Assembly (NCBI GenBank): GCA_002104905.1 | Contig: MCFE01000356.1 | Coordinates: forward strand, 23,931-87,930 | Direction: 5' to 3' | Origin: Basidiobolus meristosporus CBS 931.73 | Lineage: Eukaryota > Fungi > Basidiobolomycota | DNA length: 64,000 nt | In this document: positions 2,008-64,000 of the stretch, piece after piece | Layout: the number at the start of each line of letters is the position of its first letter | Position numbering within the stretch: position 1 is the stretch's first letter | Made by a program: the position numbers and the translations under genes | The notes under the pieces: model-generated | What the model saw: the letters and a program-made list of their open reading frames with translations, nothing else | Database searches by the model: none | What the model was told of the DNA's origin: nothing

Positions 2008-2429
2008 GCTTATACTGTAACGCCAAGTATTTAGTATCCAGCAACCTTTGTAGGCTCAAAATCAAATTCTTCAAATAATTCATTTCTGGTGCAGATATGG
2101 TGATTGTGTATTCTAGGATAATTGTGATCCGAAATGGACAATATGAAGTCGGAGAATTCTCAGAATTGAACAGTCACTTCCTCGACATCACACAATCACA
2201 TCGTTGCAACATTTATCCGATCGCAATATGTTGACTTTTTCCAGAACTAATTAATTCACTGATCCCGAGATATTTCATCACTGAAAGCTGATGAGCTGAA
2301 CAGTGCTCCAATTGGCCATATTTCAATAGTCGTTCTCGTTATCGGCTGGAAATAAACCGTTACTCTTCCTTGATATACGCCTTGATACGTTCCATACTCC
2401 ACTTCATCGTCTTCGTTTCTGCTTAAACA

Positions 2430-4498
2430 ATGGAAAAGGCCATCTTGAAGGCGACGAATCGCAAGTGTGTTGAACCAAAAGCAAAACATGTTCAAAGTAA
2501 GCGTAGGCCCTATAGAATTTGTGCCACCTGCCTTTGCTAAAGCAAACTTTTAGCCCTTATCGCTGCCTCTTGGTCGGAAATCGATGCCCGGGAGATCTTC
2601 GGGCCTCTTTCTTCGCGTCTCCACGATTCTTCTTGGGTGGTTAGTGATTTGTATCCTTCTGATGGATTCTCTTTGGTGGATCTTGACCCAATTCACCTAC
2701 ATGTAGACCGTATTCAAAGCACTCATCGTAGCCCATCGTCTTTTGAGAGATGGCTGTTCGGAGCGTTTATATAACCAACTTTCCGTACAACCCGGTCTTT
2801 TCAATGTATCGGGATTTCGGGATAAATCCGGCACAAATGGTAAGATTCCCTAGGTTGCTGGTGAGACGATTCTCTAACTCAAAAACCTGAACTTTCCCAC
2901 TGCGAATTTTATCAGAGCAAACGAAAAACATTAGAAGTTATGCTGCATATATCGAGGAGAAAGTGCTTATCTATCGAGAGACAAAGAAAGACTTCACCCA
3001 AAGTAAAAATGGAGAAAACAGTAGTCTACGCAAACTCACTATCAGCCAGGGGCTATTAAAGGAAACTAGGTTGTTGCAACGACAAATCTCAACTCTGCTA
3101 AATTGTAACGTGAGTGGATTACTTCGCGTATGGTCACACCGTTTTGTACCCGGCTAAATACCACTCGTCTATAGTTTTACTTGGACGAAGTCAATAATGA
3201 AGTGACCTTGTCTGCGTACTGTTTGTTGATCAAGGATCTGCTCAAGTTATTCCAATGTATGAACGAGGCCGTTATCAACATACTCGGTAAATAATGCAAT
3301 ATGCCCGCCATCCCCACTGGTATTCTAATTATCCCATGTTAGAGCATTATTTCGAGATGGAGAAAATCGATGCGCGAAACTCACTTGAAGTCTACCGCAC
3401 CTTCACTCAATTAACAGAAAGGGTCTTGGATTATCTAAACACAGCACGTCGGATTCAAGGGGCTCTGGACGTAAATATCCCTACCTTGAAGCATGTACTA
3501 TCGTTTTCATCGTACCATCCATATCAGATCGAAATGACTGAGATTTTAATGTTCAGGCACCAGTCAGTTTAGCGCTCACACTAGAAGAATACCTGAACAA
3601 CCCGGATTTTGAAAATAACCGCAGACAGTATCTCGAGACCAAAAAGATCCCTCAGCAAAATCTGGATACCTCGAGAAGCGTAGAGACCACTGCTTCAGGT
3701 TAGTGACTTTGTACAGACCAAGCGTCGCCCGAGCTTTTTCTAATTGAAACATGGTCATCAGTCACCCGTTCTGACACCATATCCCCTACCACTCGGCTAC
3801 AGCCTCAATCCCAGCCCCAATTCCAGGCACAGCCTCCTTTGAACCAGACAGCGACTGCTCCAGTGGCCAAGGCAGGGCCAGAAAAGGAGTTGATAGACTT
3901 CTTTGCCAGCATCGAAGAAGATCCATCTGCGTTCAACAACACTATCAACATGAGCCAACCGTTTGGGACGATTAATCAGCCACCTTCATTTGGAACGCAA
4001 CAGATCCCATTCAACCAGCAGCCTTCACAATTCCAAGTCACTCCCCAGTATTCGAACACATACCAAGCCACTCCCCAGTACTCGAACACATTCCAAGCAA
4101 ACCAATTCCAGCAGGCACCTGTGACCCAAATCCCGCCCTCTAGCCCGAGCAACCCATTCCAAAAGCAATTCACCTCTCAAACTGTCCGGAGCCCGACCAA
4201 CCCATTCTCCTCGCAGACGGTCTTGGCACAAAACACCAATCTGCAAAGATCGGCCACCAATCCGTTTGCCAGAATGGCAGCCCAGCCCAATCCAAATGCA
4301 CTTGCCTGGAATCTATTCAACCAAGGGTCATCTCAGCATCCTAGCCAGGGTCTGAATCTTAATCAAAACCCAAACATGAACCCAAATCCGAATCCGAACC
4401 CAAATCCAAATCAGTTCCACCCTTCAATGAACAACGGCTTCCAGCCCCAACCGCCCAATGAGATGCAACTCTATCGGAATGCCTTTGGCAACGCGTAA
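2430..4498 (+). CDS. ANTH-domain clathrin coat assembly protein (AP180/Yap1801-like), multi-exon
   Basis: Exons MEKAILKATNRKCVEPKAKHVQ, TVFKALIVAHRLLRDG, LLKETRLLQRQI, LEHYFEMEKIDARNSLEVY; Q/N/P-rich tail with three NPF motifs. Confidence 0.9.
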
Positions 4499-4844
4499 CC
4501 TCCCCTCACTTCCACTTCTTCGGCTTCCCATGTCATGGAGCTTTAAATAAACTGTATAATTCGTGATTGGCGCCCATCCACTCTAACTATAAATACGACG
4601 CCAACCTCATGCCACATTTAGCAGTCAGTTCATTGGCTGGAGTGGATGGAAATTCCTATGGAAACTTCTCTGGAGATTTATTAAAGCAAAAAAATCGAAC
4701 AAAACTTCCAAGTAAAGCCAGCCACGTCGGGCAGGAATACATTGATGAAGCATAATGCAAAATTTACATTCAAAGCAAACAGATACAATGCCAGATTATT
4801 GGGTCTATGTACAGATTCTCCACCATAAGCTTGCTTTCAAACAG

Positions 4845-6371
4845 CTACTTTCGCGTCTCGGAGGTTTTCTTGCTCTTCTTACTGCGCTTTCTTCCGCTGG
4901 GTAATGACTGGGTCGAGTATTTGATACTAGGCACTTTGGGCGGCGGCTTGAAATAGTACTGCTTGTCCTTCAGTGTACATGATCTGGTTCCCTTCACCAA
5001 TGGCTTATATGTATCTCTTCGCTCGGGGTCGGGGTCGCTATTGACAGCGTAGTGCCATAGGTCTGCGAGTGGTTTACCACCAGCATCTTTTCCTTTACGA
5101 ACAACGTGTCCAAAGAAAGGATATCGATGCAAGCAGCGAGCAACATCTAGCTCGGTAAGTCGTCGCTTCTCATAGAATGCCGAGTAATCTGTTGCAATAG
5201 AGCTGAATATCTCCGAGGCACTTAACATATGCTTGCCTGTGAAAACAATCGCTGCTACGATATTGTCGATAAGCTCTTTCTGACTTGGGTCGATCTTTGG
5301 CTTGGGGGATTTCTCTGTCCTCGGCCGCTTTCTATCTCGAGTACACTCCTCAGAAGCACTGCTAAGGTCAGAGTCGGAGTTATCACTAGATTCCAGATCT
5401 GATAAGTCCATGTCTGATGAACAGTACGAGAGCTCCGAATCCGACGAACCATCAATTGGGTCATCGCTTCGGAGAGAACTGTTGCAAATACTGCTAGCTG
5501 GGCTGATGTTGCGGAACGCCTTAGACCTAGGGTTGTTCAATTCTGACTGAGACTTTTCGGGTCGCTTGCTCCCGTTCGTGGAGTTTTCCTTAATGATCTG
5601 AGGTGTCCGCAGTGAATCCTTGTCAGTCGAACAGCCTTTAGCATCGGCACTTTGCTCAGCTTCAGCTGTGGGTGCGGGGCTTCCAAAAGGCGGTGATGGT
5701 AGATAATCCAAGTGTGGAATCTGAAACCGATACCTTATCCCAGCAACATCGATGATGTTCCCGTTCATCAGCTTTTTGGAGCATTTAGCTTTAAACAAGG
5801 CTCCGTCAATGTACAACCCATTTGCTCCAATAACGTTAATTGTAAAGGCTCCACTCGTCTCTTCCCAACTAATAACAGCGTGCCTGCGGGAAACTTTCCT
5901 ATTAGACCCTCCAAGATTGATTGTTGCTGAGCGCCCACGGCCTAATGTTATACTGGAGGTATAAGAGCCAAAAATCACTTCGATTGAATCTTTCTCAGTA
6001 TCCTCGCAGCAGGGAAAATCACTTGGTTTCGTGTCATTCTTGGAAGATGCAATATCGGGTTGTGGAGTCTCCAATATAGATACTTTCGTCAGTTCGGCTG
6101 TCTCAGTCTTAACTGTGATTTCGGCAGGAGCGGAATCCTCCAGTTGCGATTTAACTGCTTCTAATACAAAGCTGGAGTGAGTAAAACTTCCTCGAGAAAC
6201 ATGATAAGCGTTATCGGTCTACCTTCATTATTGAAGAAATCAATAAAGCTTTCTCGAGTATCTTCCGAGTTAGCATCCTAAATATCGATGATAGGCGGTT
6301 TGAGCATTGTACTTCCTCGTATGATACGTGTTAATGAAGCAACCTACCAATAAAAGATCAGCAATCTTCAT
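4845..6371 (-). CDS. TOS4: FHA-domain transcriptional regulator, Tos4/Plm2-like (5' exons inferred)
   Basis: FHA motifs ITLGRG, SRRHA, GANGLYIDG; C-terminal VVRKGKDAGGKPLADLWHY...DPDPERR block typical of Tos4/Plm2. Two upstream GT-AG introns give the start MKIADLLL at 6371. Confidence 0.8.
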
Positions 6372-13418: not shown

Positions 13419-14865
13419 CAGTGTTGGTAATAAATGGTAGATCCTGTGACTTGCTCACACAGATAATCAAGTGCCTGTTGTGAATGCTTAACCAGGGATA
13501 TCATACCTCTTGATCCGCATGACTCAAAAACCACCTTGACCTCCATATCAGGCTCATCCCAGATCTCATATCACACGATAAAAGTGTGGGAGCAGCAGCG
13601 TTTATTTGCATCTCCACTCGCGATGGATAGCGTGATAGTGGTAGATAAGATTTATTATCGATAGTTTCACAGCCTCACGCTACTCAATAAAGCCCGCATT
13701 CCATAAGCCGAAACAGCTGGATTCACACGGTTCGTGTCGTTCAATTAGTCTAAATATGTGGCTAGAATGGCGAATGAGCCCTAACTTGTATTAAGCAAAC
13801 ATCGGCTCCACTCTCGCACAAGCTCACCTGTCGCTGGGCAGCATCTAGTGATATTACTCGCCATTCGGAGAACCTGTCTCGGCTTGTATACAGAAATGTC
13901 TTGTTTGATCAATGATTGCAGCCTTGAAAATAGAAATATTTCGTTTGCTCGACGATTGTAGGCTCTGCTCTTATTATACCTTACACAACATAACATGACC
14001 CCAACGCACCCCATCGCACGTTGGAGCAGGCTAACCTAATCATATCGCTGGGTATCAGATGATCTAGACTCTTTTTTGTCCAATAAAGGCAATCCGACGA
14101 GAAGCCATCACGAGTAGCAATAATAGATTGGGATGCCTTTTTGAGATGACTAGACTGCCAAATGGTGGGCGGATCATGTTGTATGCATCAACTACCAAAA
14201 GGCCAAGTTGTTTACTTTTCTCAGTGCAGTGCTGATGGATCGTCCGCATCATCGTGTGAACTCTCAATGTGGTGTCATGTACAGCTATCTCTGGGGACGA
14301 GTGCCGTCTTCCCACCGTATTAGTCCAAACTAGCCATGTATGATCCGTGTATAATCCAACGCTACCCACCGCCATATTAGTTCGGTCCTCCGCTCCACCA
14401 CCAAACCCTTGAACTAAGGGATTAACTTCATTATACTAAATGCGGAACTCCCTCCGGTATCATCCCACGCCAATCCTGGAGTAGATGTCAGATATGACAT
14501 TGGTCATTTGATCCTCAAGCTATCTGTCGAATCTGTTGAACGGAACATACAACTTCAGTCATACCTTGCCGCTAAATTTAATTATGCAATGCTTAAGGGA
14601 ACCGCTTTAATCCAATCACAGCGCACGATCGAGGAGGGGAGAGGTTGCAATGATTGTCCCAAAATATAAAAGCGTACTTGGGCCGAGCAGAAGCCAATTC
14701 AAACCTCTCCCTTTGTCATCATCGGTTGTGTTGTCCTATTTTAATATAGCGCAGCCCTATCTCACAGCCCTGATAATCTTTGTTTGTTGGAAATCTCTTC
14801 TGCCTGGACATCCTAGTTTGGAGGAGTGAATGCCAAAACATCTTCTCTAAATCATTGTACAAATT

Positions 14866-17039
14866 ATGAGTCATTCAAACATCACTACTGGGCATCAGCA
14901 AAATTGTCAATTAGACTCACAATATCATTACACTTATTCAAGAGTTCAATCTACTGGCAATACACACAAAGCAGTCATTTACCCACAATCCACGCAGCAA
15001 CCTCATATAGTACAACCTAGTGGGCTTGCGGCTTATCAAGATCGAAAATTTCCTCAATTTATAAACAGCAACATGGAGTCTCTGCTATCCGTTATTGATC
15101 ATCCTCCACCCATTCCTATACATCACTCTCGGGTCATGAACGAAAACAATAATCCGTTCAGGCCTAACAATTCGAAACCCCCGACACATGTTATCCGGGG
15201 TCCTCAATATGACGATCTTTCTGGCTCTATCCCGGAGCGCACTTCGTCTGCAACCATGTCAATATCGGCTATCGTCGACACCATGTCCCCACCAATGATA
15301 AACAACTACTCGCCTAGCAGAAACTTGCCGGTTTCCTCGATGCTTTCTTCAAATTTGCCGATGCCCCAATCTGCTCACCCATACTACAGCGTTCCTTCTT
15401 TTCACCCTATCAATTCTCCTGATATCATCCAATATCCACAGAGCAGCATGCTGCCCACTACACCCATCACCGATAGTTACTATCACAGCCCACAAACTAG
15501 CCGGAAGCGAAAAGCCTCCTACAGTTACGAGGAAGCACACATGAATCAGAGTCTGAAAATCCAGAAGCGGATAGGCGATAGGATTTTGCCGGTGACCGAA
15601 AGCCATGGCTCGAACCCGCAAACATTCTTGTCGAATATGACAAAGATTACCTGCTGGCATGCTTCCGTAGCTCAGAAATCCTACGGCACTGAGAAGCGAT
15701 TCCTTTGCCCACCACCAGTAGTTACAGTTCATGGCTCGAGCTCCGCTGAGAAGCCTCAGTTGAGCATGTCGGTGATTTGTGAAGCTGGCGCCGGGCCTGG
15801 GCAATTAGAACAGAAAGCCATGCTGGATGAAAACCACAGTGGCACTTTTAAGTATCTGCATGTTAGTGGGACCGCCAAAGCTAAGCAATTTGCCCTAAAG
15901 TTGAAGGTAATTAACCCGGCAGATCGAAGCTCCCTACGGGTTGTGGTATTAACGTATTTATTTTCAACCCTTAGGTTTTCAATAACAAGAGCCCAATTCC
16001 CCACGCCACATTTGATTCCTCACCCATATCCATCATATCGAAACCATCGAAGAAAACCTCGAAAACAAGAAATGTTTCTTCTTGTATATTCTCCGGATCC
16101 ACTGTGTCCCTCTTCAACCGTATAAACTCTCAGACAGTTCGCACAAAGTATATGGGCATTGAGTCTGGAATGCTCTGCGCCAAAAACTCGACCTGGTCAG
16201 CATTCTCGATCACTCTTGTGGATTCCCCACCCTCTGATACAGGCAGACCCATGCTTAATTCCCCCATTACATATGGCTCACAAATCATTCTGACTGATAC
16301 TGCAACCGGTTTTTGCTCTGACCCCCTGATTATCAGGAAGGTTGAAAAAGGGAGAATTGCTCAAAATGCTTCAGGCCCCGTGAGCCAGATGCAGAAAGTT
16401 GCGCTACAGAAACTTGATGATACCGGTTCTGGTGTGATGATGTACCTCTCGGCTTCCAGCTCTCCCAGCGATCAACATGATGCTACCACTGGGTCCAACC
16501 CATTTCTCTCGTACAAGCGGGCCAAGGTTAATGCACACGGCATCGATATACTGGATCCTTCTAACCTCATCGAAGAGGTAGACGATTACTTATCATGGAC
16601 CATAGTAGGCATCTCCAAATTCGAATACAACTATCTGGAGAGCCTTGGTCCTACTACTCGGCCCATCACACCTTTCCCATCGTTGAGTTGCCCAGCAATA
16701 TACAAGCCTAACACCAATACGTTGGAGCTTACCATTCGTCATTTCCATGCACATGACCAGCCACTTGAGGTATGGCTTGGGAACCATGGGCCACTCGATA
16801 TTCGTATCATCTGGCCTTCAGTCGGCTCGGTGGTTATGAAGGGACATGAAACTGTTCTGGTTGCACATCTTCCCAAACACGAGGAGTTATTTGGGGCGAA
16901 TTACCGTCACCTCCATGAGCCATTTCTCGAGCTTCCGCTTCTCTTTGTGCGTGATGATGGTCTTGTATATAACGTATGTCAGTCTCTTCGCTATGAGCAG
17001 GAGCGGCATGGAAGACCCAAGTCGGTCAAAGTACTCTGA
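14866..17039 (+). CDS. CSL-family (CBF1/Su(H)/Lag-1; fungal Cbf11/Cbf12-like) transcription factor, 2 exons
   Basis: CWHASVAQKSYGTEKRFLCPPP, ISIISKPSKK and SLFNRINSQTVRTKY DNA-binding motifs; beta-trefoil region (SQMQKVALQ, WTIVGISKFEY); intron at about 15908-15973 restores the frame; long low-complexity N-terminus. Confidence 0.93.
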
Positions 17040-18000
17040 TGCTGCTTTGAGAGAGATTGAGGAGCCGGACCCCTCCGTGTACAGCGGCTGTAGTTATCAA
17101 ATCCCTAATTTTTGATTCACATTTGTGATAAGGACACTTTGTATGATTGTATTTAGATTTCCCCTATGATGCTCATAATAATAATACCATTGTTACTACT
17201 ACTATCGTTACTATGGAATCAGTCACCACACACACTAACAGTCCGCTTCTTTGCTATGTTCTACGGAGTCATCCAAACGTGAATTCAACCTATCCGATTC
17301 TGCCTTGCATCGAGCACGCAATATGTTCCGGAAAACGAGTTTTTCGGCCTCTGCCAATGACTAGATTGGGAATGTTACACGGTAGCGTGAAAGCCACCTC
17401 TTTATATCTATGACACTTCGGGATTTGATGGATGAAGCTGTACCACTTGAGAGATCCAAATAAGTGAGGACACTCTAGGAATGGCACGAGTTCAAAGAAT
17501 TCCACCCCTTCCTTTGAAGAGCTTGTGTACACCGAAATTCAAGTCCACTCTACTTGTCTCCCGCGTGTGGATCACTACACTAAAAGGAATCTTCCGCGAG
17601 AACACATGCGACTGAGGTTTGTATGGAAACCCGATTGGACTCGGATGATAGAGTGACACATTATAAATCCAGAGATAGGGAGATCGTTTTATCACCATTG
17701 TATCCAGGCTACAGTCATACCGCCTTTAGGTCAGGCGGACCTTCAAGGTTGCATGTCAGTGAGTTGCAATTACGAATATTCGTCTGACTCAACTTGGTAG
17801 GATATGTAACTTAATTTGCCGATGAATACATCCACTAACGAAGGTATTCATATTCGAATGGTTCGTAATTACTCGTAACCTACTTTCCCAACCTGTTAAC
17901 TTTACTACCAACCCACGTTTTTGTTACACTCGATAATATATGCGCACGAACTGACAAGCTGAGCAGCAGAGAAGGGATATATACATGGATCAGACAAGTA

Positions 18001-18808
18001 CTAAGGATTGCTCACATAGTTGGTGAGCGGAGTTCTCAGCAAGGATGCTGTGATATTTCTATGATATCCTGATGTGATACTCAAGGTCCGGAGTAACTTA
18101 TCTCGCAAAAGCTCGTCGCTTCCTTCATTCTGAAATGAACTATTCAGTATCTCTATTCCGTTCAAGAACACTCATGGCCAATGCATACCTGAAAATCGAC
18201 GTACATTAACGGGATATCGTACAACGCTCGAACACTTTCCTCTAGTTCAGCCCGCTCGAATGCGTACTGGGACACCTTGTTTGCTGTATGAGTTTAGTAT
18301 TGTCAACAGCACTTACGGCTATTTCGGCTAGAGGAAATATCAATACCATGAGTAGCGACTATCCAGACTCTTCCCAACAGGAACTCGGGATCTATTTCAA
18401 TAAGACATTCCTTCAGATTCACCAAGGATTCTCTATCCCTCATGTTGACCAATAGTACAATGAAATCTATCCGGGGTCGCGGGGTGAGGATCTCAGGTAA
18501 AGGCAAACTTTTTCCAAGGCGACTATCAAAGGTCATCAGGTGAGCAAATTCGGGCCAGAACTCTGTCCAGGGTCTATGCGAAGGGGATATTTACAGTTGG
18601 AGCGCAAGGTCGAAATTGTTTGGTCGCAACAACGTACTGCTGAACGTTTTTTTACCGGAGTTGGGAGAGCCTAGAAGCTACAAAGAGATCGTTAACTGGG
18701 AATCCAACTTAGAATCGAACATTGTTTCCCAACCAGAAGGCAGGCGCTTTTGTGGACATTTTGCGAAGGAAGCGAAGAGTATGGCGTGAGCAACGGTCTG
18801 GTAAACAT
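18001..18808 (-). CDS. CENPM: Centromere protein M (CENP-M) orthologue, 185 aa, 5 exons
   Basis: Exons 18808-18734, 18677-18595, 18522-18347, 18283-18189, 18129-18001 splice in frame. LRLGKSLPLP...RPRIDFIVLLVN...SL...IDPEFLLGRVWIVAT, LYDIPLMYVDF and KLLRTLSITSGY align with remembered human CENP-M (VHLAKSLPLP..RPRIDLIVFVVN...VDASFFLGKVCFLAT...YQSPLLYCDL...RLVRVLQICAGH). Confidence 0.88.
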
Positions 18809-19000
18809 ACTTCCCACCAGTAAACCGAATTCCCTATTAAAATGATTTCCAATGCTTGGTTATAGAAATGAAATAAAGCATATTGAAAATGATTGTTGAT
18901 TAGTCTGATTAAGAGGTGGGGCTTTTTTATTTGTATTAGATAGAAAAACAATAAGTGGACAATCAATCATGTGAATGTACAGGACAGAGCGGGTGTTTCT

Positions 19001-57987: not shown

Positions 57988-60900
57988 ATGAGCCCCGAGC
58001 TGTCACTCTCTGCAATGTCTACTACTGCTATTACTGGAATTTTTCCCTTTGCTGAAAAGTTGGATGGATCTAACTACCAAGTGTGGAAGGTGAAGATGAA
58101 GATGCTCCTACAAGAAAGAGGCCTTTGGGATATTGTCATGGGAGAAGAATGCCCTCCTAAAAACGTGGGAGAGGAAGCCTTGAAGTACCAGAAGAAAGAA
58201 CAAAGTGCCTTTAACTGCATTTGCCTTAATGTCAAGGACAAATTGCTAATTCAATGCTCAAGAGCAAAAACGGCAAAGAATGCCTGGAAGGCATTAGAAG
58301 ACACCTACCAGTCATGTTCAGCTGCCAAGAAATTGTATCTGAGAAGAAAATTCTTTACTACAAAGATGCTGCCAGGAGAAGAAATGAAAAATCTAATTAA
58401 CAGAATTACCCTGCTGGTAGATGAGATGGAATCTGTGGGCATACCAACTACTGATGAGGATGTGATAGTTACCATCCTGAATAGCCTGACAGACGAGTTT
58501 CAGGGCCTTGTATCAGCCCTAGAGTCCAGAACTGAAGATTTGACCTTAAATTACGTATATGGAAGGCTCCTGGATGAAGAATTAAGAAAATCAAGTGCCA
58601 ATAAGAAGGAAGAAGAAAATGCTTTAATAAGCAATGATAACCAACAAAGGAGGTACCCAAGACCCTACAAAGGCAACAACAACCTATTTTGCAACTACTG
58701 CAAAAGGAAAGGACACACATCAGACAGGTGCTTCAAAAAGAGAGATTATCAGCAAAAGAAGCCTGAATATGGAAATGCTGCAACAACTGAAGATAGACTA
58801 TTCATATCTGCACTAAATATGACCACAAACAAGGATTCTCAGACGTGGTATATTGACTCTGGAGCTTCTCAACACTTTACACACCAAAAAGAACTTTTTA
58901 CCCAATATCAAGAAATTCCAATTAAGAAGGTTTTCATGGGTGACGATAGAACACTTGATGCAGTGGGAGAAGGAACTATCCAAGTAAACCTTAGAAGCAG
59001 TGAAGGAAGCCATACACTGACCTTTAAAGAAGTACTCTATGTACCAGAAATAGCCAAGAACCTACTCTCTGTAAGCAAGGCCACAGCAGAAGGACTCAGT
59101 TTCAGTTTTGACAATTCTGGATGCAGGATCACTGATCAAAATGGTGCCCATATTGCTTCGGGCATCAGAGATCAGAATCTATACAAGTTGACTTATATTC
59201 CATCATATCTGGAAGCCAATATAAGTAACTTAAATGAAGAAACACCAATGCTTTGGCACAGGAGATTTGGACACATCAATTTTGATTATTTGCGTAAAAT
59301 GATCAAAGATCAGCTAATTTCTGGAGTGAAAATTGATCCCCCAGCTAATTTGGAGCACTGTGAAGCCTGCATATATGGGAAACAAGCCAGACAACCGTTC
59401 AAGAGCTCTGGGTTAATCAAAACTAAGAAAAAATTAGATCTAATTCACTCAGATCTGTGTGGACCTATGCAAAATTTATCCTTAGGTGGGATGAAGTATT
59501 TAATCACTTTTATTGATGATTATACAAGATACACATGGGTCTACTTCATGGAGAGAAAGGAAGAAGCTCTGTCTAAGTTCAGGGAGTTTAAAGCCATGGT
59601 GGAGAGAGAAACTGGTGAAAAAATCAAGAAAATACGCTCTGACAATGGTGGAGAATATACCTCAAAACTCTTCATCCACATCTGCAAAATTCATGGGATA
59701 AAGCAAGAGACTACTGTACCATACTCCCCACAGCAAAATGGAGTAGCAGAACGAGCTAACAGATCAATAATTGATATGGCAAGATCTATGATCCATGATC
59801 AAAAATTATCCTATGATTTTTGGGCGGAATCAGTTGCCACTGCTGTTTACCTTAAAAATAGGAGTTATAACAGAATACTTTGTGATTCTACTCCATTTGA
59901 AGCATGGTATGGATACAGACCAAGTGCAGAACATCTAAGAATATTTGGGTGTACAGCATATGCCAAAAAACTGGCCAGAAATCAGTCCAAATTTGAGCCA
60001 AAAAGTGTAAAATGCATATTTTTGGGCTACTGCAATGAGAGTAAGGCATACAGACTCTACAATACCAAAGCAAAGAAGCTGATCAAGTCCAGGGATGTGT
60101 TGTTTGATGAAAATTCAAAATTTTCACAAAAAATGACATCAGATGATGACGAAAATTTGATCTCAAGTCCACCAATTGTCAGGATTGAATCAGAGCAAAA
60201 CAATGAAAATTTTTTCACTCCAGAGGACTCTACAACCGTGGTTCAGCCAGAATCAGTGCCCAGGAATATCCCAGAAGTGATCATTCCAGTATCAAATGCC
60301 TGGAGATCAAATCGGACAAGAAATAGCCCAAATTACTATATTAATGAGGGTACAAACTTAGCCTATGCCTATTCAGTCCATATTGATGAACCCCAGACTG
60401 TAAAAGTGGCCCTAAATAGCCCTCAGACAAAGTTTTGGAGATCTGCAATGACTAAGGAATATCAGGCCCTGATGGAAAATCAAACTTGGGACTTAGTCAA
60501 ATTACCAATCAACCAAAAATCAATTTGATGCAGATGGGTATTTAAGACAAAATACAAGGCTGATGGTACAATTGAAAGATACAAAGCAAGACTTGTAGCC
60601 AAAGGATACTCTCAAACAAAAGGACTTGACTATACTGAGACCTTTGCACTGGTAGCCAAGTTTAATTCCATCAGATTAATATTGGCTATTGCAGCCAAAT
60701 ATAAGTTTTTGATTCATCAAATGGATGTAAAAACTGCATTTTTGAATGGAGAACTTGATGAGGACGTGTATATGGACCAGCCTGATGGGTTTGTTGACCA
60801 AGATAACCCCCATTTGGTCTGCAAGCTTAAAAAGTCACTCTATGGTCTCAAACAATCACCAAGAGCCTGGAATTGCAAGATAGATTCTTATTTGGAATCT

Positions 60901-61959
60901 TTGAGTTTCAAAAGGAGTAATGCTGACTATAGTATATACTATAAGCCAGATAGAGCAAATCCAGTTCTATTAGCTCTATATGTGGATGATCTTATTATAG
61001 CCGCCAATAACCTAGAAACATTGGAAGAGACTAAATCCAGCCTATCTAAGGAGTTCAAGATGCCTGATCTAGGAGAACTTAGTTACTACTTAGGGATTAA
61101 GTTGTCCATAGACAGAAGTACCCAGACTATTACCCTAAGCCAATCCAAGTATATTCAAGATATACTAAAGAAGTACCAAATAGAAGACTGTAAACCGGCA
61201 GCTACCCCAATGGAGACAAACCTTAACTTGGTCAAAACTCAACCAAATCAAGAGAGCTTGGTGCCATCTGAAAGCCCTGACTTTCCTTATCAATCTATGG
61301 TTGGCAGTCTGATGTCTATCATGCTTGGAACACGTCCAGATATCTCATATTCAGTGGGAGTTGTCAGCCAACATAATCAGAACTATGGATCTGATCATAT
61401 TGCAGCAGTTAAGCGGATTTTTAGATACCTAAAAGGAACTGCTGATATCTGCTTAAGATACACTTATAAGGATTTAGGACAGGATCTTATGGGATACTCT
61501 GATGCTGATTGAGGACAAAATTTGGAAGACAGAAGATCCACCACAGGATACACCTTTCTTTACTGTAAAGGAGCAATTTCATGGAATTCAAGAAAGCAAC
61601 CAACCGTAGCACTTTCTACTACAGAGGCAGAGTATATGGCAGCCTGTGAAGCTACAAAAGAAGCAATGTGGTTAAGAAAGCTCTTTACAGATTTAGGCCT
61701 ATGTCAAAAAACGCCTATTACTTTATTTCAAGATAATCAAGGATGTATACAATTAGGTAGAAATCCAACTTTTCATGCTAGAGCCAAGCACATAGATATT
61801 AGACATCATTTCATATGTGAAGCTATAGAGAATAGCTTAGTTAGCTTAGTTTACTGTCCTACAGATGAAATGATTGCAGACATATTTGCCAAATCATTAG
61901 CTAGAGACAAGTTTGAATATCTTAGGTCAAAATTAGGACTAGTCAGTATGAACATTTAG
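57988..61959 (+). pseudogene. Copia gag-pol polyprotein with TGA stops at 60526-60528 and 61510-61512
   Basis: KLDGSNYQVWK (gag), CNYCKRKGHTSDRC zinc knuckle, WYIDSGASQH protease, LWHRRFGH, HSDLCGP/SDNGGEY/QQNGVAER integrase, [30 protein letters not shown] RNase H; the three ORFs are all in one frame. Confidence 0.95.
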
Positions 61960-62319: not shown

Positions 62320-64000
62320 ATTTTAACCTAAGATATTTAAGCTTGACTCTAGTTAATGGTTTGGTAAATATGTCTGCAATCATTTCATCTGTAGGACAGT
62401 AAACTAAGCTAACTAAGTTATTCTCTATAGCTTCACATATGAAATGATGTCTAATATCTATGTGCTTGGTTCTAGCATGAAAAGTTGGATTTCTACCTAA
62501 TTATATACATCATTGATTGTCTTGAAATAAAGTAATAGGTGTTTTTTGCCATAGGCCTAAATCTGTAAGCAGCTTTCTTAACCACATTGCTTCTTTTGTA
62601 GCTTCACAGGCTGCCATATACTCTGCCTCTGTAGTAGAAAGTGCTACGGTTGGTTGCTTTCTTGAATTCCATGAAATTGCTCCTTTACAGTAAAGAAAGG
62701 TGTATCCTGTGGTGGATCTTCTGTCTTCCAAATTTTGTCCTCAATCAGCATCAGAGTATCCCATAAGATCCTGTCCTAAATCCTTATAAGTGTATCTTAA
62801 GCAGATATCAGCAGTTCCTTTTAGGTATCTAAAAATCCGCTTAACTGCTGCAATATGATCAGATCCATAGTTCTGATTATGTTGGCTGACAACTCCCACT
62901 GAATATGAGATATCTGGACGTGTTCCAAGCATGATAGACATCAGACTGCCAACCATAGATTGATAAGGAAAGTCAGGGCTTTCAGATGGCACCAAGCTCT
63001 CTTGATTTGGTTGAGTTTTGACCAAGTTAAGGTTTGTCTCCATTGGGGTAGCTGCCGGTTTACAGTCTTCTATTTGGTACTTCTTTAGTATATCTTGAAT
63101 ATACTTGGATTGGCTTAGGGTAATAGTCTGGGTACTTCTGTCTATGGACAACTTAATCCCTAAGTAGTAACTAAGTTCTCCTAGATCAGGCATCTTGAAC
63201 TCCTTAGATAGGCTGGATTTAGTCTCTTCCAATGTTTCTAGGTTATTGGTGGCTATAGTAAGATCATCCACATATAGAGCTAATAGAACTGGATTTGCTC
63301 TATCTGGCTTATAGTATATACTATAGTCAGCATTACTTCTTTTGAAATTCAAGGATTCCAAATAAGAATCTATCTTGCAATTCCAGGCTCTTGGTGATTG
63401 TTTGAGACCATAGAGTGACTTTTTAAGCTTGCAGACCAAATGGGGGTTATCTTGGTCAACAAACCCATCAGGCTGGTCCATATACTTGTCCTCATCAAGT
63501 TCTCCATTCAAAAATGCAGTTTTTACATCCATTTGATGAATCAAAAACTTATATTTGGCTGCAATAGCCAATATTAATCTGATGGAATTAAACTTGGCTA
63601 CCAGTGCCAAGGTCTCAGTATAGTCAAGTCCTTTTGTTTGAGAGTATCCTTTGGCTACAAGTCTTGCTTTGTATCTTTCAATTGTACCATCAGCCTTGTA
63701 TTTTGTCTTAAAGACCCATCTGCATCAAATTGATTTTTGGTTGATTGGTAATTTGACTAAGTCCCAAGTTTGATTTTCCATCAGGGCCTGATATTCCTTA
63801 GTCATTGCAGATCTCCAAAACTTTGTCTGAGGGCTATTTAGGGCCTCTTTCACAGTCTGGGGTTCATCAATATAGACTGAATAGGCATAGGCTAAGTTTG
63901 TACCCTCATTGATATAGTAATTTGGGCTATTTCTTGTCCAATTGGATCTCCGGGCATTTGATACTGGAATGATCACTTCTGGGATATTCCTGGGCACCAA
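62320..64000 (-). mobile_element. Second copy of the same copia family in inverted orientation (RT-RNase H region), truncated at the 3' LTR of copy 1 and running off the window
   Basis: Reverse complement of about 60250-61933 with scattered substitutions; shares both TGA stops and has extra stops near 62500-62512. Confidence 0.95.

Follow-up and report, generated by a model that had tools for sequence, protein, structure and literature searches.

The minus strand at positions 18001-18808 of the DNA analysed here, a 64,000-nucleotide stretch from Basidiobolus meristosporus (the window), raises two questions: whether the gene at this locus encodes an orthologue of the kinetochore protein CENP-M, and where its coding sequence begins. 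The gene was assembled by reading the minus-strand frames together with GT..AG splice sites, and it consists of five short exons:

18808-18734, minus strand: exon 1, with the ATG at 18808 and 25 codons; it covers the 'LTPYSSLP' motif at the N-terminus and the beginning of the first strand.
18677-18595, minus strand: exon 2; the remainder of the first strand, followed by a degenerate P-loop, GSPNSGKKT (18645-18671), and by the first helix.
18522-18347, minus strand: exon 3; the conserved CENP-M core LGKSLPLP...RPRIDFIV...FLLGRVWIVATH, followed by the donor GTATTG at 18346.
18283-18189, minus strand: exon 4; ANKVSQYAFERAEL...YDIPLMYVDFQ, included in the public protein ORX90868.1.
18129-18001, minus strand: exon 5; the C-terminal helix region, with the stop codon TAG at 18003-18001, also included in ORX90868.1.

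The CDS is 558 nt long and encodes 185 aa. The four introns are 56, 72, 63 and 59 nt long, and each of them is GT..AG. An in-frame stop is located 18 codons upstream of the exon 1 ATG (18808). The ORF track exposes exon 3 only (18303-18536, 77 aa, minus strand). The splice-site reading therefore bears out the preliminary description of this DNA, which had proposed five short exons, one of them visible as an ORF, and a product of 185 aa.

The family assignment is carried by exon 3 and by the public protein from the same locus, ORX90868.1 (137 aa). Against the Pfam family PF11111 (CENP-M), exon 3 alone scores 47.6 bits (E 1.6e-12) and ORX90868.1 scores 76.9 bits, covering profile positions 47-169 of 174. 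Both exceed the gathering cutoff of the family, which is 25 bits. In a search of all PDB chain sequences, exon 3 matches human CENP-M only (4p0t, 7qoo and others; E 7e-10). ORX90868.1 likewise matches CENP-M chains only, aligning to human residues 47-165 with an E-value of 9e-18; in this alignment, exon 5 corresponds to human residues about 140-165. Exons 1, 2, 4 and 5 are too short to score alone, and individually they gave nothing against Pfam and PDB. PF11111 is the sole significant family and the PDB matches are all CENP-M, so the identity proposed in the preliminary description is correct. The PDB also holds a divergent 180-aa chain named 'Centromere protein M' (9okb_J; also 9okd, 9oke, 9okk and 9okl), and this 9okb_J chain matches ORX90868.1 weakly (E 0.006).

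An exhaustive HMMER search found 117 relatives of ORX90868.1. Among them are proteins that bear the name CENP-M in Paraglomus, Dimargaris, Dissophora, Gamsiella, Exaiptasia and cat. The nearest relatives include proteins from Calcarisporiella, Paraglomus, Dimargaris and Mortierellaceae, several of which already carry the CENP-M name in UniRef or NCBI; the Basidiobolus protein is only about 35% identical to its nearest family relatives. Exact look-ups of the exon 3 ORF and three neighbouring ORFs gave no match, nor did a metagenome scan. A word search that used exon 3 (77 aa) as the query also gave no match, under a 135-aa length limit that left out the 137-aa public protein.

The locus is already covered by public records. 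Window positions 10656-32371 are 100% identical over 21,716 bp to contig MCFE01000356.1 of assembly GCA_002104905.1. This contig also encodes the B. meristosporus CBS 931.73 protein that a search with the neighbouring serine palmitoyltransferase exon retrieved. In GenBank, the CENP-M gene is ORX90868.1, 'hypothetical protein K493DRAFT_55443'. The same 137-aa product is UniProt A0A1Y1XYP9, and UniRef100_A0A1Y1XYP9 is named 'Centromere protein M'. The preliminary description had called the gene hidden, a claim that does not hold in view of these entries; the CENP-M identity of the B. meristosporus locus is both correct and already known. The public gene (13836-14371 of the retrieved contig record) corresponds to window positions 18536-18001, and its sequence is MTFDS followed by exons 3, 4 and 5, with a stop identical to that of the 185-aa model. 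The exon 3/4 and 4/5 junctions were therefore arrived at independently and are the same in both models, including the GTATTG donor at 18346. The two models differ at the start:

18523-18536, minus strand: public start, with the ATG at 18536, inside intron 2 of the 185-aa model.

In ORX90868.1, the five intron-derived residues MTFDS stand where the 185-aa model has 53 residues. Exons 1 and 2, which are absent from the public protein, encode the first strand, the first helix and, between them, the loop GSPNSGKKT.

The five-exon structure was assessed with a family profile built from 70 full-length relatives, with ORX90868.1 left out. This profile was scored on the 74 stop-to-stop pieces of window positions 17900-19000 on both strands. 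The five top-scoring pieces are exactly the five exons, collinear and covering profile positions 8-187: exon 1 (positions 8-37, 11.1 bits), exon 2 (33-58, 10.0 bits), exon 3 (55-121, 75.4 bits), exon 4 (117-148, 19.0 bits) and exon 5 (139-187, 22.7 bits). The sixth-ranked piece scores 1.6 bits. For exons 1 and 2 the scores are low, at about 10 bits each, with E-values of about 1e-3 and 2e-3, respectively, when corrected for the 74 pieces. When cut at the proposed junction, exon 1 scores 8.3 bits and exon 2 scores 9.7 bits, compared with maxima of 3.2 and 3.1 bits in 500 composition-preserving shuffles of each. The relatives were chosen through exons 3-5, a choice that has no bearing on the matches of exons 1 and 2. 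Collinearity was assessed exon by exon, and on this basis the predicted protein appears collinear with CENP-M over its full length of ~180 aa, including the N-terminal strand, loop and helix. The five-exon CENP-M gene is confirmed, and the junction between exons 1 and 2 is the only part of it that we infer.

For this junction, we prefer a donor GTTGGG at 18733 and an acceptor at 18678, the same as in the earlier 185-aa model. The predicted product reads ...SACLL|LLGSPNSGKKT across the junction and keeps the G-x4-GK spacing of the family. The exon 2/3 junction is also a predicted one. Three other arrangements were rejected. An exon 1 that begins at the ATG at 18759 (13 aa) has no profile match. 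Moving the donor to GTTCGA at 18720 and the acceptor on by 7 nt places a 3-residue insertion inside G-x4-GK, and the pieces of this version sum to 16.5 bits before any insertion penalty, compared with 18.0 for the chosen junction. A longer exon 3 with a donor GTAAGT, a 33-nt intron and 10 extra residues conflicts with both the public model and the family spacing.

Could the 137-aa model nevertheless be the true product, starting at the ATG at 18536, with the upstream 'exons' as unused remnants? It is the model deposited in GenBank, and all candidate donors of intron 1 (GTTGGG, GTTCGA and GTTGGA, in window positions 18678-18733) are atypical, with T at +3; six other local introns that we inspected in the CENP-M gene and LCB1 start with GTA or GTG. 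This feature of the donors may be why exons 1 and 2 were missed in the public model. However, a 137-aa product would be without positions 1-46 of the PF11111 profile, which comprise the P-loop together with the first strand and first helix. The match to ORX90868.1 begins at about residue 45-58 in most full-length relatives, which indicates that the public protein is without about 50 N-terminal residues. In addition, two open and spliceable upstream pieces match precisely this missing region, in order, and no family member has an equivalent of the MTFDS start. We therefore regard the 137-aa product as very unlikely and favor the five-exon gene. The corrected gene start is the only new element here and a small one: the 185-aa model would restore the N-terminal 53 residues. 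Alignments, structure predictions and CCAN models that draw on ORX90868.1/A0A1Y1XYP9 would be better served by the 185-aa model; beyond such housekeeping, the significance is slight.

The restored region contains the G1 loop GSPNSGKKT, in which both glycines and the lysine are kept and a lysine takes the place of the Mg-coordinating Ser/Thr. No DxxG or NKxD motif was seen in the 185-aa translation. That an ordinary Ras/Rab-type small GTPase has been taken for CENP-M can practically be dismissed: CENP-M does have a G-domain fold and the Basidiobolus copy does keep G-x4-GK, but the Ras, Rab, Arf and Roc Pfam families match neither ORX90868.1 nor any of the exons at E <= 1, the best Pfam match is PF11111, the PDB matches are all CENP-M, and the Ser/Thr of the Walker A motif is replaced in a protein in which the other two motifs were not seen. 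Among the CENP-M relatives, 40 of 116 have G-x4-GK with the same spacing as in Basidiobolus, and in 35 of these 40 the residue that follows is other than Ser/Thr, in most cases Arg, His or Lys. The form G....GK[KR]T occurs in several of the fungal relatives. The GSPNSGKKT loop is of a type that is normal for the CENP-M family outside vertebrates. Retention of the P-loop in distant CENP-M members was stated by Basilico et al. (2014; PMC4080450).

[quoted passage not shown] By analogy, the Basidiobolus protein would be a single-domain scaffold subunit with a small-GTPase fold that does not switch. It would bind the CENP-I orthologue and stabilize an inner-kinetochore (CCAN) module made up of CENP-H/I/K/M. 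We infer the loss of GTPase activity, the CENP-I binding and the kinetochore localization in Basidiobolus from the human protein. Judged from its sequence, the locus very probably is a B. meristosporus CENP-M gene whose ~185-aa product has a small-GTPase fold and most likely serves as a non-switching scaffold for a CENP-I orthologue. The glycines and lysine kept in the P-loop make some nucleotide binding possible. If so, CENP-M of the Basidiobolus type would stand, as a living intermediate, between an active GTPase and the pseudo-GTPase of humans, and kinetochore assembly would depend on its nucleotide-bound state. We consider this very unlikely, and a non-switching scaffold remains our preferred reading of the protein.

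On MCFE01000356.1, the public gene order is LCB1, Rrp40, the 137-aa gene with the CENP-M hit and a CSL/LAG1 gene. The last of these encodes a CSL-type transcription factor (LAG1-DNAbind, BTD and TIG) at window positions 14866-17039 on the plus strand, convergent to CENP-M. Its public model of 428 aa corresponds to window positions 15637-17039 only. An open reading frame begins with an ATG at 14866, so the 5' end of this public model, too, may be incomplete. In B. ranarum, the closest LCB1 orthologue (72% identity) lies on contig JASJQH010001809.1 at 2229-4846. Rrp40 and CENP-M were not detected downstream of LCB1 on that contig, so either the LCB1-Rrp40-CENP-M order is not conserved there or that LCB1 is the other paralogue. 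Elsewhere in the window, two ORFs encode Ty1/copia-type reverse transcriptases, at 60682-61512 (plus strand) and 62741-63610 (minus strand), with Pfam RVT_2 scores of 192 and 204 bits. They run in opposite directions with about 1.2 kb between them and have one identical peptide stretch in common; a single retrotransposon family may thus be present here in inverted or nested copies.

The presence of CENP-M in early-diverging fungi is on record. The preliminary description had suspected that comparative surveys list it there, and this is indeed so. In Dataset EV1 of van Hooff et al. (2017; PMC5579357), CenpM is listed for Mucor circinelloides, Phycomyces blakesleeanus, two Mortierella species, Conidiobolus coronatus and Spizellomyces punctatus, and also for Capsaspora, Salpingoeca, Dictyostelium, Acanthamoeba and Aurantiochytrium. 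In Dataset EV2 of the same study, the CenpM profile correlates best with that of CenpI (r = 0.756). The reading that early-diverging fungi retain an animal-like CCAN with CENP-M, as drawn in the preliminary description, had already appeared in print in 2017 (van Hooff et al., Dataset EV1). A 2020 review table has a CENP-M entry for M. circinelloides (PMC7729030), and neither CENP-M nor Basidiobolus comes up in the main text of the Navarro-Mendoza 2019 preprint. Basilico et al. (2014; PMC4080450) stated that most fungi have lost CENP-M. The wording of a 2022 review, in which CENP-M is 'lost in fungi' (PMC9252888), is imprecise. A zoopagomycete-grade fungus with CENP-M fits the published picture, in which CENP-M was lost later, within Dikarya.

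Human CENP-M (4P0T, 7QOO; PMC4080450) and the Basidiobolus protein are both about 180 aa long with one G-like domain. The two are collinear over human residues 47-165 (E 9e-18) and have the motifs LPLP, RPRID and F(L)LG+V in common. They differ in the P-loop: the Basidiobolus protein has both glycines and the lysine (GSPNSGKKT), whereas human CENP-M is without the two glycines (PMC4080450). B. meristosporus itself is absent from the species set of van Hooff et al. (2017); the CenpM proteins of early-diverging fungi in that set are members of the same family from the same region of the fungal tree. On visual comparison, the N-terminal motif L[ST]PY..LP is common to Conidiobolus CenpM and the Basidiobolus protein, G-x4-GK[KR]T is found in Mucor and Conidiobolus CenpM as well as in Basidiobolus, and the block YAF.R.E...YDIP is shared with Mortierella CenpM (van Hooff et al., 2017).
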